DNA of 63,715 nt, filler included, from Polymyxa betae A26-41 (Eukaryota; Protista; Endomyxa: Phytomyxea): assembly GCA_003693705.1 (NCBI GenBank). It is 4 parts of 4 records of this genome, joined end to end, with 100 filler letters (N's around TTAATTAATTAA, not from the genome) between each part and the next. Parts side by side here need not be neighbours in the genome. Positions count along the whole stretch, not along the records: positions 1 to 31,873 come from RBZT01000195.1; 3 more parts are not named here. One strand, written 5' to 3'. A program made the translations under genes and the position numbers. The notes under the pieces are model-generated. The model saw only the letters and a program-made list of their open reading frames with translations. It ran no database searches and was not told where the DNA came from. Shown piece by piece: positions 3,712-31,917 of the stretch. Numbering within the stretch: position 1 is the first letter of the stretch; the number at the start of each line of letters is the position of its first letter.

Positions 3712-4843
3712 TGGATTGGATTCGATTCGATTCGACTAGTTCGCTGATTTATAGTCATCAGGCGGCGCTCTTGCCAAAACGCATGGCTGGAAAATTTAGG
3801 CGAATTGCCCAAATAGATTCCAGAACCCGTACTACCGATTTCGGGGCGTTCCAGTAATTCACCCGGACCTATGAGAGCCTCGATAAGGTAATGTAGGCAC
3901 CCGCCCAATCCAACAGGGACTCGAACCCATGTACCCTATCCATATCTAATACTCCCCTACTGATTTCCCAGCTTTCACCATGCGTCGCTAAATATCACAG
4001 CCGAGAGAATTTGCTGCAGCTAGAATTATTTCTTTCGATATTTTTTCAATGGATTTTGAAATATTTTACATTTCAGCAGTTTATATTTTATAGTCTCACT
4101 CTTTTTATTGCAGTGTCGACACTCATCGCTGGGCTCTATATTTAGATTGTGTAAATGTGATCGAGATCGAGTGTGTCCTGTTCGTACTCTGTTTAATAGA
4201 GGGCTATCAAAGTAGATCTGATAGTTTGTATAAGCCATCTCTGCTCTGTGTTCGAGAATAACCGTCTATTAGAGGACTTCGTTTTTGGGTAGTTTGCAAA
4301 TCCGATTGAAAGATTGTAATGCGATGATTTCTGCTTCATAGCTTGACGTCACATGTTCTATCTGTATTGAGCTGTGGATCTCAAGTTCAAATATTGTACT
4401 GTGTGGATCTGGGTCCGAGATGTGCAGTATTGAAGCAGCTTCACTTGTTATGTACTCCGTATTTAAACTGTCTCTGTTGAAACTGCCGTCTGTCCAAAGC
4501 GAAATATCGGGATTGGTGGGAATCAATTGGGCGTTCTCGTGTTTTTCTAACGCTTCAGCTCTGGAACTCATGTGAAATTTACATTTTGCAAGTTGTTCTA
4601 GTATATAGGATTTCACTATTATCTGTGATGAGCGCTATATCTGTTTGTTGTAACTTCTACAGCTCTTCTAACAAGTCCAAAAGGGGTCCATCCATCAGCT
4701 GCACATCCTTGTTCGTCCCATTTTATGTAGTCGTCTCCTAATAAGTTGCCCTGAGCTTCTGCCTTGAGGACTGTTAGTGCCGAATCTGAAATGACTTTTA
4801 TTTCAAATTCGAAAAGTTTTTTTTTCAGGATTTGATGACTCAT
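3712..4843 (-). mobile_element. 5'-truncated decayed LINE (RNase H + C-terminal zinc knuckle + 3' UTR + GAATC/CAATC tail)
   Basis: RNase H motifs SLWTDGS and SSYEAEIIAL (4269-4616), then RVRTGH...CRHC...ETI...C (4026-4238). Ends in short (GAATC/CAATC)n repeats at about 3712-3733. Broken by stops and frameshifts. Confidence 0.8.
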
Positions 4844-6727: not shown

Positions 6728-7646
6728 TCCGATTTGTGCGCAATTTTTGGCCTCAAGGTTTTGAATTGCAAAACATGAAATATTTCAAGAAACTGGAGTG
6801 GGACTCGTGACCTAGGGTTTTGCTGACAGATTGATGTGAGAGCGGTTTTTTGAATAGCACAACGTAATGATGTTGAATGAAACGTGATCAAGAGATCTGA
6901 AACTAGAAATACAGGACTCCCTTTACATTAGATTATAGTGGACATCTTTCTACCGTTGATTATAGGCATCTGTTGCGAATGTTTTTCAAACGAAAGTGGT
7001 CAAGAAAGGATGCAACGAACATTGAACTAACGATGAAAACGCTAACCCTAGCAATGATCAGGTGACGAAGCTCCCCGAAAAATGAGGATGACCCATTTCT
7101 ACGAAATTCGAATCTATTCTGTGAGTACTTGATGTCGATTTGGCCAGATTGCTGAGATAGATGAATGTTTAATTCAAGCAGGACATATCATGAATATGAT
7201 CGCGGCTGCACTTTCGACTGGAAATGGTGAAAAAAACTCTTTCGAGCATACACGGCACACAAAAACGATCAATAACACTAACGGCAGCGTTGTCTGTTGC
7301 AGTAGACTTCTCTGCGTTATGAGCTGAGGACGACATCTCTGTACGAAAGATAAGAGTGGGTCGCCTTGATTTTCCAAAGACCAAGTAAAAATCGGCGCCG
7401 AAAACGCAACCATTTTGCTTGAGAGTAGGTGACCCATTAAGACGCAACGAAACTGGAGAGAAAGCGGCTTGGCGCGGCCTGGTCGTTGGTGGATTTTAAA
7501 TTGCACCCCTGACTCGGAGTCACCGACACGGATTTGAATCCAAAAACTATTTGCATACAGATTTGCGCGTCATTTTCTGCCTCCGATTTTCTGTCGGAGC
7601 TCGCCAGCCATATTTCAAATGATGATATTTAATAGTTATCTCACCC

Positions 7647-10201
7647 TATATAGTATGGGTCGCCGACCTGACGACCCAGTCATTTGGCGACCTTACTGAA
7701 ATAATGCGTACAACGCATTTCTTGTAAAATACAAAATGCTTAGGAGTCGTTGTTCTTAATCTATTATAGTCGTCATCGCCAGCGGCATCATCCCGTCTGG
7801 TCGAAATGGCGCTGGTCGACGAAGACCAGCACAATACGATCACCATGGATCAGTCTATTGCTCAAATTGGCCAGCTTCATGTTGAAATGGAGCAGTCGGT
7901 TCACCGGACGTATGTGCGGGCGGTTCAGAATCGTGCCCCAAACACCTCAAAATCCTATACTGCGAAGCAAGACGAGTTTAAGCAATGGTGTCTTCGAAAA
8001 GGGTTCCCTCAAGATACCAGGTTCACCGTTTCTGGGCCCAAGCTCCATTTATTTCTCGAAGAAGAGGTGATTGGGCGGCGATCGCGTAAGAGGAGCCGCA
8101 ATGGCAGAACGATTGGAAAGTCCACCGTCGATTCGTATGCCGCAGCTATAGTGGACTTGCACAGCCTCCAGACCCGTTTGGGATGCAATTCAAATCCACA
8201 TCCTCGTAATGCTGACGTGCAAGCTTTATTGAAGAATACCTATTACGAACAAGAACGAGTCAGAAGAGCTAATTACGATGATCGGGGAGTTGGAACGGCT
8301 CTTGACGGCTACACGACAGCGGATCAACTAGGGAAGATTGCCAATTTTTTCTGGACTCGCTGTCGCGAATTCGGCCCTAATCTCAGGAATTGGGTGGCGC
8401 TTGCTCTATCACATTATGCAGTTCTTAGAGGGGAGTCCGCTAGAGGAATGGAACTACCGGATCTCCACTCAATTCGTCTGGAGAATGAAGGAATTAGTGA
8501 TTGTCATGCGCTTGTGATGGTGATGAGAAATGGCAAAACGAATCATTTCGGCAGAATCGAGGTGTCGACCTGCCTGAGGAACAAGAGAGTCGATATCTGT
8601 CCCTGGGGAGCTGTCGGATTCTACTTATTCTGGCGTTGGCATGTGGAAGGTGAACCATTTCCGGCATTTGTATCGAGTCGGGATTGGTATGATATCAAAT
8701 TGCTTAAGTGTGGAAGCGATCGAACGAAAGCTATGTCCTATACAACTCATTTGCAAGCGTTTAACACCGCATTTTCGTTTATTGGTCTCCAGTCGAGAGC
8801 GAAGACACACGTCGGGAGAGGATCAGGGGCGAGAATGGCTGAGCTCGCTGGAGCTAGCGAGGCCCAGATTCGTAGACTAGGTCGTTGGAATAACCAATCT
8901 ACGGAAAACTGCTATCTCAGCAGTCTACCTCGGCAAGCTTTAAGGACTTTAGCTGGGTTCGCTCCTGAAGCAGGCACTTTCTACATTAAAAGATCTGCTA
9001 TATGTCGTCCACAATCTTTGGCAAGGAAAATATTCCCTGATGTCGAAGTATGGATGAGAAGATTGGAGCTCGAAGGCTGTGAAGCTAATATAGCGGCAGG
9101 TGGATTTTTTCAGCTTCTTTTGCAACTTCGCACGGTTATACTGCAAGATTCAGTTTTGTTGCGTCGCCAATTTCCTTCGCATCCTATATGGAACCATTCC
9201 ATCTTTTCCGATGAGGAGTTCTCTGATTTCGCCGGCCGCCTTGAGGCTGTCATTGCACAGGCGCCTGACCCCACCGAAAGAAGACTGGAGCTCGTAATGC
9301 CAGATCTGACAAAGAATAGACAATCTCCACGATGACCTAAAAAGTAGCTTTACTTCAGAACTTCGCCCAATAACAGCCAAAGTGTCAAGACTGGAGTCGT
9401 TGTTCTTGGACCTTACCACAGGTGTTGCCCCAGTGCGCCTGAACGTGAGCTTTCCCTGGTCCAAATTCAGCTCGTGAAATTGTCCAAGCGCAGGTTGCTC
9501 CTGCAATTACCTCCCAAGAAGCGGTGATTACAGTAGTCGAGCAGAATGGGTCGCGAAGAGAATCAAACTGCGAGGCTTCTTCTCAATACAAGATGAGCAA
9601 GGCGATCGTCACCATAACGGATCTGTGGAGAGAGTGGAAATATGGCTTGGGAGGCTGGCCATCTATTGAGTCTCTAGAACGGAGCAGGGGGTCGGCGTGG
9701 TGTTCTACAAAGGCTGACCGAAGATTTTTCAATCGACGAAAACTTGTAATCGATTCCATAGAATCGAGAGCCCGTCAAATGTCAGGGGAACTGTCCGAAA
9801 CTGCCAACGTCGTGGCTCAGCAATTTGAGCAACAACGGGCGTCTCTAGGGAAAAGTATTGACTGGATATCCAAGAATCTGCCCGAGTTTCTAAACCATTT
9901 CGATGTTTAAAAAAACGCAATAAACAGCCGATACGAAACGAAAAACAGAAATTTGACTGGTCTGAAGAAAAGTCCGTAATTGGAAAAAGACAAAGGAAAG
10001 AAAACCAGATCAGATGAAAATTCAAAACTTTCCCGTCAAAACTATGTTTGTAAAATAGTATAGTGGCGACCTAGGCGACCTGCAGCGGAAATATGCGAAC
10101 TTATTTACAGGCTGAGCCTGTAAATAAGCGCACTTTTTGGGGTCAAAGGTCGCGGATCTAACTGAGTCCCGCACTTCGACTGGCGACCTTCACCGTTTAT
10201 A
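7647..10201 (+). mobile_element. Crypton (CryptonF-type) tyrosine-recombinase DNA transposon, apparently full length
   Basis: Encodes a YR domain plus a GCR1_C-like domain. Bounded by a TATA direct repeat (7647-7650, 10198-10201). GCGACC(T) motifs cluster at both ends, with a perfect 14-bp-arm palindrome at 10100-10128. Confidence 0.85.
7806..9910 (+). pseudogene. Crypton tyrosine recombinase (Ndc10-like YR + GCR1_C), with two +1 frameshifts in the linker
   Basis: Catalytic set intact: LRGES (R), GKTN (K), KTHVGRGSG (HxxR), LGRW (W), ENCYL (Y). GCR1_C-like TITDLWREWKYGLGGWPSIESLE...RRFFNRRKLVI lies in ORF 9524-9910. Bridging frames IDNLHDDLK (from 9316) and FPGPNSARE (about 9452) imply two single-base insertions. 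Confidence 0.85.
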
Positions 10202-11106
10202 ATTGTTGCGATCTGATTTAGTTTGCGAGTTTTGCGGAAGTTTTTGCGGTTTGCTGTTAGGTTCCTATCTCTTTTTGTCTGGACATCATTTTCATGCCTT
10301 CGCTGTCGAGTGGCAGTGGCAGTGGACCATGTCCAGAACTGCCGCTAACCGACAATTCTCTCGCGAGCCTCATGGCAGTTCGTCAAATGTGAGAATCGAT
10401 TCTCCGAACCCACATTCGTGCAAACGAAATCATATCAGCTAATACATCGAAATCGTACAAGTTGAATCCAAGCAATGGTGTATTGATTATTTATTGCATT
10501 AATAAAGCATCATCTCGCTGGCAATAAATTAAATACAATTGAAAGCTAACATTAGAAATGCTAACAGAAAAAGTCTTGAAAAATATAATAGGCAAATTTT
10601 CGATGAAACGTTGTTACCGAAACCCGGTGTGGCAGGCCTCGCAAGAGACATGAGGATGCTGCAGGTTTGATATCGCGATGCATAATGTGATTTGTTGCAG
10701 CTAGATGAGATAGAAAAGCGTCCATAAGAGATGAATGTGAAGCCGACAGGATGGCGAAAATTCGAAATCGATTAGGGTGATTGATGAGAGAGTTTGCAGT
10801 CAAACTATTGGGTGAAAGCGATCCATCGCAATTAATACTGTTTCACTAAGCATCTAAGCAAACTGAATATATAATTCCAGAAACTTTATAGCCGTTAGTT
10901 TGGGTCTCGCTGAGAATGAGCATTTCGCTCGCTTGTCTGCCTATGCACTTCATCATCGTACGATCGATGCTGTCCATTGCTGCAAACTCTGCTGCCGCTA
11001 TCATTTGCTGACAGCAGTTCCAGCTCCTTTTAAAAGAGAAAAAAACCATGTATTCGCAAGTTGTCGATAGCCAAACCGCTCGCCGAATTTGGCCGTATGG
11101 TTTAGA

Positions 11107-11247
11107 TATATATTGATATGGGTAGCGTAGCGACCTGCGCTGTAAATATTTACAGGCTGAGCTTATAAATATGCGCACATATTTGGGTCGCAGGTCGCGG
11201 GTCCTCACAGTGCCACGGAAAAAGAATGGCGACCTGGACCGTTTATA
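11107..11247 (+). mobile_element. Miniature non-autonomous Crypton-related element (141 bp)
   Basis: Starts TATATA..TATGGGT like the Crypton left end and ends TGGCGACCT..ACCGTTTATA like its right end. Carries the TATTTACAGGCTGAGC.T.TAAATA palindrome and GCGACC motifs. Confidence 0.75.
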
Positions 11248-11877
11248 TTTCAGCCCATGAATGTTATGTTATCAATTTATCATACGTGGAAGGGCGCAGC
11301 CTGCGGCGCGGACCAAGCCAAATGTCCGGAAACGAAAATGATCATTTCATGTCTACCAAGCTTCACGGTACTTGTCTGCTTTGATTCGGCTATTCTGTTG
11401 TTTAGTAAACATCTTAAAATAACCACTGGAAAGTTGTCTTCTATATGTATACTGTATACTAAACAACCTCTGAAATATGTCTGAACCTGCACATCAATCC
11501 TATACACAAGAACAGGAGGAGACTGCCGCCCAAAAGGTTTATGAAGCCCGCAACATGGACTCGGGTTCTGAAGGTAGCTGCTGTCTGAGACTGGTAAGAG
11601 CCCACGGCCACAAAGAGACCGGAGGGAGTCAGGGATATCCGCCTACAACGCGATGCTGAAGCGCGCGACTGTAAGACTGTGTCAATATAAAGGATGAAAT
11701 CGAAGCGATATGAATAAAAAAGTGTTCAATTGCAGATTCTCGATGATGGTTAGATAGGCGAACAGCATAGTTGATCATCAGCTGATAAATCTTGCATACA
11801 TTTGACGTCAATTTCTAAATAAATTTCAAACAAAAGAAGATCGCATTCATAATGAAGTGAACGACTAAACTATACGA

Positions 11878-29324: not shown

Positions 29325-30130
29325 CTAGCTGTTGATTATTGTTGTTTTATGTTTCCATTTGAGAGGAGAAAGTTTTCGGAATAAGAAATTATTATCACAT
29401 TTAACAGGACGTGAAGCATCAAGTCTATGTCTGAAATGAATAAGGTGATATTGTTGTTGTTTGGGGTCAGAAACGGATTTGATGATATCCGCTTTACAAA
29501 CACTGCAGCTTAAACTACTGTAAAGAGTTGTTAATCGATACAGAAAAAATTTCCAGGGTTGATATCCTTGAAGCATACTACAAACAAGGTCAGTTTCCCT
29601 TCCACACAGCCCTATTGAGGCTCATACCAGGTTTCCTCTAGAAAATCAGGTTGCTGTATTGCCCAGGCAGCTAATCGATGGCATAAAGCCTCATCGAATC
29701 GATTGTTAAATACGATCTCGAGCAGTTCGTAACTATCAGGCAAAGAAGGAGCGAGATTCTGACAGGTAGCACGAATTCCACTGCAAAGATATCTGTCGCT
29801 GATATAGAGCATATCCTTGAGAACAGCCTCGCTGAAGGGGCGTCCTCCTATGGGATAGATCCAATCAAGAAATAGGAGGATGCGATCTGCCTTCTCCTGT
29901 TCAATCGTGACTTTGGTAGATTCGAAACCGTCTTTGTGATTTTCAACCCACGTTGATCCAGGTTGAAACATTGTTTTGAAGAATTGAGAATTTAGGGAGA
30001 GCATGAACTTATGGACTTTGAATGATGTCGGTGGATCGCCCTTCACCTCTAGAATAACATCGCCATCATCATACCAGTGCGGTTTGGCAGCATTAGACTT
30101 GGCTTTGGATCCTGCAGACTCAACTGCCAT
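29325..30130 (-). CDS. BTB/POZ protein with small C-terminal Cys/His domain, tandem copy 1
   Basis: DGDVILEV...FKVHKFMLSLNSQFFKTMF BTB motif; an ~50-nt GT..ACTGAC..TAG intron joins the two ORFs in frame. Confidence 0.85.
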
Positions 30131-30466
30131 TTCAGAAAAGTAACTGGGATTATGGATCGCCGGTCGTGTTCGACTTGCGATATTTACGATGGTTCGACGA
30201 AATAAGAATCTGAGTGTGGTTGCACTAAAGCAGCCTGGTTCAAAGGATCGTTTTTAAAACTTCATCATTTTTATTAGAGCTGAAAAGTTACACTGAGTAA
30301 GTCTCTTGAAGCAGACCGCTGACTATAAAGCCATACACAACCTCTTGGTTGGGTGCATAACAGGGCCGTCCGACTTAATCGAGACAGGATGTCGGAAGTT
30401 TATTGAAAAACATTTCCTTCACTAAATCATGCCAAGACTGTAGGTTAGATGATGACAGATCTGCGA

Positions 30467-31250
30467 TCATTTCCATTTAAAAGGAATAAGTTTTCCAATT
30501 AAGACCTTAACATTGTCACATTTAAAAGGACGTGAAGTATCAGCGATATGTCTAAAACCCATGAGGTGAAATTGTTTTTGTTTGGGGTCAGAAACGGCAT
30601 TGATGATAACCGCTTTGCAATTGTTGCAGCGTAAACTACTGTAGAGAGTTGTTAATCGATATAGAAACAATTTCCAGGGTTGATATCCATCAAGCATACT
30701 ACAAAGAAGGTCAGTTTCCATTCCACACAGACCTATTGAAGTTATACCATTTTTCTTCAAATAGATTAGGTTGCTGTATTGCCCAGGCAGCTAATCGATG
30801 GCATAAAACCTCATCCAATCGGTTGTTAAATACCATCTCGAGCAGTTCGAAGCTATCAGGCAAAGAAGGAGCGAGATTCTGACAGGTAGCACGAATTCCA
30901 CTGCAAAGATATCTGTCGCTGATATAGAGCATATCCTTGAGAACAGCCTCGCTGAAGGGGCGTCCTCCTATGGGATAGATCCAATCAAGAAATAGGAGGA
31001 TGCGATCTGCCTTCTCCTGTTCAATCGTGACTTTGGCAGTCTCGAAACCGTCTTTGTGATTTTCAACCCACGTTGATCCAGGTTGAAACATTGTTTTGAA
31101 GAATTGAGAATTTAGGGAGAGCATGAACTTATGGACTTTGAATGATGTCGGTGGATCGCCCTTCACCTCTAGAATAACATCGCCATCATCATACCAGTGC
31201 GGTTTGGCAGCATTAGATTTGGCTTTGGATCCTGCAGATCCAACTGCCAT
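30467..31250 (-). CDS. BTB/POZ protein with small C-terminal Cys/His domain, tandem copy 2
   Basis: Exon 1 nearly identical to copy 1, same intron position, diverged exon 2. Confidence 0.85.
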
Positions 31251-31917
31251 GTCAGAAAAGTAACCGTGATTATCGACAGCCGGTCGTGATCGAATTGCGA
31301 TATTTACGATGGTTTGACGAAATCTGGCAGAATCTGAGAATGATTACACTAAAGCAGCCTGGTTCGGAGAATCGTTCTACAAATCTTCATCATTTCATAA
31401 GGGCTGAAATTGAACAATGAACAAGCTGTGGGCAAAGCGATTCCCTCATCATTCTGGTGCTCTGGTTTACCATACGTTCTTCTTACAACCATTCGATAGA
31501 GAATGACTTCACCTTGAGATCGACGAAAGGCTCTGAGACTGCGGAGAAGCTGGATTCTTCAAACTGGACTTCCCCAAAATCTGACATGATCTGCTGTGTG
31601 CAGAATTACCAACGAAATCTTTAGGATATCATATCACTTCAAGATGCGCAATTCTAAAAGAAGGGTTCGGTGGCGATTTTCTGGTCCAAAACCAGACAAG
31701 GCTGAGAAATAGTGATTGAAAAAGCAGCCAGACGTTCTACGAGGAAAATTAATTGAAGATACGAACATACACAGCCACTGGCGGAGGGACTTCTACATCG
31801 AACGCGTTATTCCCTACCCCCTCTGTTGATGTAAATACCGTAGGCTCTCTTATAATTAATTCTCTTATAATTANNNNNNNNNNNNNNNNNNNNNNNNNNN
31901 NNNNNNNNNNNNNNNNN

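Follow-up and report, generated by a model that had tools for sequence, protein, structure and literature searches.

A frameshifted CryptonF apparently joined to a non-autonomous Crypton through a six-base core in Polymyxa betae

The CryptonF elements of oomycetes and fungi encode a tyrosine recombinase with a GCR1_C domain, have no terminal inverted repeats (TIRs) and end in 6-bp direct repeats, as exemplified by CryptonF-1_PI, CryptonF-5_PI and CryptonF-1_PS in their published description, which also names the non-autonomous Cryptons CryptonI-1N1_RPro, CryptonA-1N1_OL and CryptonS-N1_PS (Kojima and Jurka, 2011; PMC3212892). In Chlamydomonas, a CryptonF has been described that integrates by way of a donor motif and a target motif and excises cleanly (PMC9977147). 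The Starship Hephaestus, also a tyrosine-recombinase element, forms a circle junction via short microhomology, in a report that still terms the circle hypothesised for Cryptons (bioRxiv 10.64898/2026.09.21.753150). Here, we analyse a 63,715-nucleotide stretch from the genome of the plant-root protist Polymyxa betae A26-41 (assembly GCA_003693705.1; hereafter the window, in whose coordinates all positions are given), which contains a 3.6-kb unit at 7625-11250. Our overall explanation is that a frameshifted CryptonF (family 1) recombined through a short core into N1, a non-autonomous element of a second family (family 2), that the elements have unlike left (L) and right (R) ends, and that they move by exchange at the core; we give this explanation a probability of about 0.7.

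The GATAAT and ATTATC repeats of Phytophthora CryptonF elements overlap the ATAAT of the P. betae core (PMC3212892, supplement 1). The P. betae host, a plasmodiophorid rhizarian, is not in the host table in the accessible part of that paper, and the subterminal boxes, the L/R asymmetry and the box-to-core spacing are not described there either. With respect to its ends, the open reading frame (ORF) runs the opposite way from that in the oomycete-type relatives. With CryptonF-1_cRei the locus has in common a short donor motif at one terminus, a near-identical target and rearrangements at bare targets (PMC9977147); the motif of that active element, however, is CACCG/CAYCG, whereas the P. betae copy is frameshifted and is present in all runs covering its junctions. 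Like the published non-autonomous Cryptons, N1 elements are internal-deletion derivatives that keep both ends and outnumber their parent, but one N1 copy has the element of another family in place of its left end. Starships differ in their recombinase family and giant cargo, and their circle has been demonstrated by reads and experiment, whereas for Cryptons the hint of a circle is a lone contig from a sister family. In the 40-mer at the Hephaestus circle junction, too, GGTCCC and GGGACC flank the crossover, possibly by coincidence. Lambda integrase and Tn916-type systems, which the P. betae element would resemble, combine a complex donor site carrying extra boxes with a simple target, a second DNA-binding domain and an overlap of 6-7 bp. 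In comparison, the second domain of the P. betae protein is the C-terminal GCR1_C, there are no clear inverted core-type sites by the hexamer, and neither an excisionase nor a host factor was seen for the element.

The two elements and their ends

The features of the unit, all on the plus strand, are as follows.
7625-7630, +: left core hexamer ATATTT, the true left boundary, in register with eight non-autonomous left ends and with the junction core of contig L079
7631-7710, +: L-type end, with 6 nt, a TATCTCACCC box at 7637, GGTCGC at 7658 and AAATAATGCG at 7699
7663, 7671 and 7687, +: CCGACC, ACGACC and GCGACC boxes of the L-type end, respectively
7806-9335, +: tyrosine recombinase ORF (NDC10_II; Pfam, E 4e-64)
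9310-9910, +: out-of-frame rest of the gene, linker and GCR1_C domain
10066-10198, +: R-type end of family 1, with GCGACC boxes at 10066, 10075 and 10183, an inverted box at 10148 and a palindrome at 10100-10128
10199-10204, +: right core ATAATT of family 1, also the join to the non-autonomous element; three other copies diverge directly after it
10205-11100, +: interior of N1, its first ~105 bp missing, with 93-98% ungapped identity to four near-full copies
about 10351-10509, +: decayed 5' fragment, inside N1, of a recombinase gene from family 2 (tblastn E 0.001)
11101-11244, +: R-type end of N1, with boxes at 11130 and 11229, inverted boxes at 11186 and 11193 and an imperfect dyad at 11147-11171
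11245-11250, +: right core ATATTT of N1, a perfect direct repeat of 7625-7630, where 10 other copies break

Positions 7625-10204 are a CryptonF of 2.58 kb that is now frameshifted. Its catalytic residues are intact, R208, K244, H335, R338, W361 and Y370 being invariant in an alignment with 14 homologues, and the fold predicted for the recombinase finds Ndc10, Cre and Flp as its matches. The GCR1_C domain at 9524-9907 (Pfam E 3e-19) lies in another frame than the recombinase; relative to the intact homologue P0001, tblastn frames place two frameshifts, near 9312 and near 9451-9456. Sequencing runs X1, X2, X3 and X8 were examined as Logan contigs, which lose rare forms; the extra base at 9451 is missing from the X1, X2 and X8 contigs and present in X3. 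The element has neither TIRs nor long direct repeats, but short terminal direct repeats of ~6 bp; its copies are dispersed, with flanks that differ between them in the genome searches, and neither an ORF nor a Pfam match for a reverse transcriptase or DDE transposase was found within 7625-11250. With an R-H-R-Y recombinase, a GCR1_C domain, no TIRs and dispersed copies, the element has every CryptonF trait that could be assessed, and the Crypton recombinase recognized in an earlier, sequence-only reading of this locus is confirmed. Crypton-like loci number in the dozens across the P. betae genome (79 matches), and among named proteins the closest belong to Riccia, Phytophthora and Aphanomyces (47-58% identity).

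Two observations concern transcription of family 1. Run X3, which looks like RNA, contains a contig identical to the window minus 9455-9509, a minus-strand GT-AG intron; this contig is a spliced antisense transcript of 8977-9789 (minus strand) that crosses the linker between recombinase and GCR1_C. Another family-1 copy, C186 (L071), has an internal deletion of 9014-9756 and breaks after 9883; its deletion joint is also present in X3, and the copy may be transcribed.

To the right of the family-1 core, 10205-11250 reads as N1, a multicopy non-autonomous Crypton of the second family that is ~1.15 kb long when full. Full copies measure 1142-1188 bp from core to core and keep both ends and no intact gene; the copy in the window is itself without a left end. 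Four near-full copies (C838, C858, C738 and C826) match 10203-11250 in a single alignment preceded by ~105 bp, the first 74 of which resemble window 7637-7710, and the closest of them is C838 (97.8% ungapped identity). C435 carries a decayed autonomous copy that is block-collinear with N1 and has an ORF ~70% identical to that of the window. At least seven copies have a precise right end and a left side cut at unrelated points, on C1001 (L002), C218 (L004), C224 (L005), C237 (L078), C479 (L039), C496 (L042) and C435 (L066), and there is one left-only piece (C613); the excess of right-end-only copies may reflect one-ended integration. On C435 (L066:1469-4643), a chromodomain Ty3/gypsy remnant (RVT_1, SH3_Tf2-1 and Chromo) interrupts the family-2 right end and sits just after an internal ATATTT.

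The boundaries follow from where copies break. The eight N1 left ends start at the equivalent of 7625-7630, and the 10 N1 or family-2 right ends diverge past the equivalent of 11250. The left flank-to-element junction is bridged in X1, X2 and X8 contigs, and the right flank junction after 11250 in X1. The TATA direct repeats earlier taken as the boundaries of the element are displaced from these breaks: the left break at 7625-7630 lies 22 nt outside TATA, and the right breaks come after 10204 and 11250. The TATA motifs at 7647 and 11107, proposed as the crossover core, are internal, and copies break at ATAWTT instead. The crossover core thus appears to be the 6-bp ATAWTT, not TATA, in a register that could be off by one. 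Left cores (n = 9) vary at positions 1, 4 and 5 and right cores (n = 15) at positions 5 and 6, the pattern expected if strands are exchanged by staggered cuts in a 6-bp overlap; TA at positions 2-3 is invariant in all cores, and position 4 is family-specific among the right cores. Flanks and targets have nothing visible in common beyond the hexamer.

The two ends of each element are unlike: L reads core, 6 nt, TATC box and GGGTC/GACC boxes, and R reads (C/G)GACC, 9-10 nt and core. The L-type end at 7631-7710 is 86-88% identical to the non-autonomous left ends and 76% identical to that of the sister family on L079, a score that none of 3000 shuffles reached; the family-1 R-type end is 95-98% identical in three other copies. 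Two sequence-only observations stand here. GCGACC boxes do occur in both orientations at both ends: 10 of the window's 21 occurrences fall in 400 bp of end sequence (0.14 expected), and GCGACCT was found 10 times against 2.7 +/- 1.5 in shuffles. The perfect 14-1-14 palindrome at 10100-10128 is also real, the only one in the window with arms of at least 10 bp and a loop of at most 3 nt, and it is kept between families 1 and 2; the corresponding region is not covered by the L079 contig.

Relatives and the L079 junction

P0001 is an intact recombinase of 722 amino acids that is 68% identical to the window protein and sister to it at 100/100. It lies on the Joint Genome Institute (JGI) metagenomic contig L079, which opens with 45 nt resembling the N1 right end, followed by a single ATATTT, a left end and then the ORF. 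The right-end half finds its best match in the whole window at the N1 right end, its score being reached by 1 of 3000 shuffles, and the left-end half by 0 of 3000; the spacing, GGCGACC, 10 nt, core, 6 nt and TATCTCACCC, is identical to that of the window. An R-core-L junction of this kind has the form expected of a circle or a head-to-tail dimer.

More distant relatives on L081, L101, L102 (Phytophthora cinnamomi) and L100, with 51-55% protein identity, have the same two end types, with an ORF that is inverted relative to the ends compared with the window. One end reads core, 6 nt, TATC and then GGGTC/GACC; the other reads GGACC, 9 nt and core. The box-to-core spacing is shared by L079, L081, L101 and L102, and for L100 at the L-type end only, its R-type spacing being unsure. 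L081 has ATAATG at both ends, and in L102 the L core departs at position 1 and the R core at position 6, in line with the prediction from N1. In local alignments, the L-type ends of the four distant relatives reach scores against the window that are matched by 0, 18, 23 and 101 of 2000 shuffles, so that only some are individually strong. In an unbiased count over the 250 bp upstream of 11 related ORFs, AGTTAT, GGACC, GACCC, GCGAC and CGACC exceeded the family-wise shuffle threshold. Of the cis-site grammar put forward for this locus, what survives is two unlike ends with fixed box-to-core spacing, shared among related CryptonFs; its TATA and mini-element parts do not.

Scans for the left-end pattern gave 3 JGI metagenome and 6 IMG/VR matches, all chance-like and with no recombinase nearby, and no relatives were found in viral contigs. 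L079 and L100, both intact CryptonF contigs, come from one JGI sample (3300067093); this sample probably holds a related plasmodiophorid, since each is sister to a different P. betae family. On a chromosome of the liverwort Riccia sorocarpa (L080) there is a 55% identical CryptonF-like gene with no end boxes nearby, perhaps an old insertion or a domestication, perhaps via horizontal transfer.

Origin of the unit and role of its sites

Family 1 appears to be joined to N1 exactly through the core, because its right core sits where N1 continues and because C838 has ATAATT at the position of the join, where other N1 copies mostly have AAATTT. The C838 hexamer may be an earlier unoccupied target or a later footprint. 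Family 1 would have recombined via the 6-bp core into this core-like hexamer, ~105 bp inside N1. The family-1 left end and the N1 right end would then have become the outer ends of a 3.6-kb unit with a perfect ATATTT repeat, and this unit would have been excised and re-inserted whole, leaving N1's own left end behind. The simplest reading is such a move, with family 1 supplying the L end and N1 the R end, and we rate it close to an even bet.

For transposition in general, the recombinase would bring the R and L ends together, exchange strands within the hexamer by staggered cuts, and release a circle carrying R-core-L with a single core; the circle would integrate at a bare ATAWTT, much as a complex attP does at a simple attB. 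These steps are taken from tyrosine-recombinase chemistry and from the published Crypton model (PMC3212892; PMC9977147). By analogy with arm-type sites, GCR1_C would read the (C/G)GACC boxes and the recombinase domain the TATC/GTTAT boxes, with the palindrome as a putative accessory site. Binding of the boxes by GCR1_C is speculative; in its support, a title cited in PMC12963334 reports binding of GGGACAAA-related sequences by the C-terminal part of the GCR1_C protein Hot1. The core/arm analogy gains support because the relatives show fixed box-to-core spacing, bare targets and an R-core-L junction. Around the hexamer, no clear inverted symmetry is visible in families 1 and 2 or L079; the oomycete-type relatives have TTATC near both ends.

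Several points weigh against the overall explanation. No empty site, circle or end-to-end junction of the window element occurs in the assembly or in the contigs of the four runs, so that the expected empty alleles resolving to a single motif did not appear, and no displayed run contig bridges 10204/10205. The core counts are small. The second family-1 left end, on C259 (L067:1-60), is identical to the window only from 7639 on; its outer 13 nt differ, and its core is likely 2 nt further out. The L079 junction is a single contig that a circle, a tandem dimer or a chimera would all fit, and in the relatives furthest from the window element (L104, L105 and the Riccia gene) the boxes fade or are missing.

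The strongest alternative keeps the nesting and the cores but holds that the composite never moved as a unit, a substantial possibility whose odds fall somewhat below even. In one form, N1 was resident first, family 1 inserted, and the left 105 bp of N1 were then lost between the two left cores; in the other, family 1 was the resident and its right core recombined with N1 at another locus, in a rearrangement made by the recombinase. Cryptons are documented to cause inversions and translocations whose breakpoints lie at bare target sites (PMC9977147), and no isolated 105-bp left end of N1 was found that would mark a donor site. At the window's left end no N1-specific base follows the core, so that any deletion would have been exactly at the core; for the same reason, homologous recombination between two similar left ends is disfavoured. 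A non-unit origin, however, needs either an exchange between two left ends, with a ~105-bp circle as its product, or a second event, and the perfect outer ATATTT repeat is equally compatible with a move of the unit.

A less probable account, which we consider unlikely though worth carrying, concerns the junctions themselves: the L079 junction would be a chromosomal head-to-tail dimer or an assembly chimera and Cryptons would form no free circles, or two family-1 copies would have been fused into a chimeric window contig. Insertion of these elements into one another does occur, as in the window; L079 stops before its own right end, and its ends do not overlap; and the assembly behind the window is a short-read one, with 7630-9013 at ~2x flank depth (the draft genome was assembled from 2 x 250 bp reads; PMC6328671). 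On the other hand, the family-1 right end and N1 share just 6 bp, which is too short to misjoin an assembly graph, no N1 left end precedes either of the assembled family-1 left ends, and a dimer joined through one core would itself be a product of the same crossover.

The main rival to binding of the boxes in recombination, which we judge improbable, is that they are promoter or regulatory elements, for example for GCR1_C autoregulation, or functionless inherited sequence, and that only the hexamer matters. GCR1_C is found in yeast transcription factors (PMC3212892), the L end lies directly upstream of the ORF, and some identity is expected between families as related as 1 and 2. Yet the boxes stand at both ends at a fixed distance from the core, are retained by the non-autonomous copies and, in relatives whose ORF is inverted, go with the L and R ends. 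Simple misassembly as the origin of the family-1/N1 join is quite improbable, less likely than either a unit move or a deletion or rearrangement.

Last comes the earlier proposal of a diverged, free-standing, TATA-bounded 141-bp mini-element representing the minimal recombination substrate, which is now very improbable. Its likeness to the family-1 right end is genuine, and the boxes and the dyad account for most of it: 11147-11250 is 77% like 10102-10204, and the palindrome is retained as a dyad, with two mismatches. What fails is its independence. Copies extend ~900 bp further left unbroken and finish in an L-type end, and the supposed ~900-bp spacer between two elements is the N1 interior, since the same contigs match spacer and 141 bp. 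In the genome-wide search the right boundary was common and the left was not, so that a miniature inverted-repeat transposable element or other free-standing mini-element is rejected for lack of copies sharing both boundaries; two short right-end-only fragments exist (C479 and C496), but their left breaks are different and unrelated. A local duplication of the right end is likewise rejected, as the 141 bp belong to a dispersed family with its own interior. With the 141 bp being the right end of N1, the shared motifs are a footprint between two Crypton families and not a minimal substrate produced by deletion.

Around and beyond the unit, two X1 contigs depart from the window after 11314, 64 bp to the right of the element, at another repeat boundary or a structural variant. 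A ~600-bp repeat (1-660 and 3754-4308, 80-88% identity) flanks a 536-codon ORF at 1199-2809 that has no Pfam match, and is possibly long terminal repeat-like or some other repeat. At 29352-31409 there is a tandem pair of BTB-domain genes that are 90% identical over 940 bp.

Meaning for the Crypton family

In the literature searched, no paper on Cryptons in Polymyxa or Plasmodiophora was found, nor one on subterminal binding sites of Cryptons; Repbase, where prior annotation is possible, and subscription journals, including the original 2003 paper, lay outside the search. The CryptonF kind, six-base repeats and non-autonomous derivatives are already known, whereas the site anatomy and the R-core-L junction were not found in that literature.

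Crypton transposition has reportedly been modelled since 2003 on bacterial systems. The locus and its relatives now provide candidate sites of ~80-150 bp, a predicted overlap and the intact P0001 on a contig with its own R-core-L junction, so that the circle model becomes directly testable by an excision and integration assay. A wider view, which we hold tentatively and think unlikely in full, would have a CryptonF clade spanning rhizarians to oomycetes use a two-part code, with a 6-bp ATAWT-type overlap and boxes of two kinds, of which GCR1_C would recognize (C/G)GACC and the recombinase domain TATC/GTTAT; its members would pass through a free circle as in L079 and form composites with mixed ends, and the DNA preference of domesticated GCR1_C proteins of the Hot1 type would descend from the arm-like sites. 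Ndc10, Gcr1, Msn1 and Hot1 derive from CryptonF, and the finding is relevant to how these proteins came by their DNA specificity, as well as to the possible use of a eukaryotic recombinase with a 6-bp target as an integration tool.

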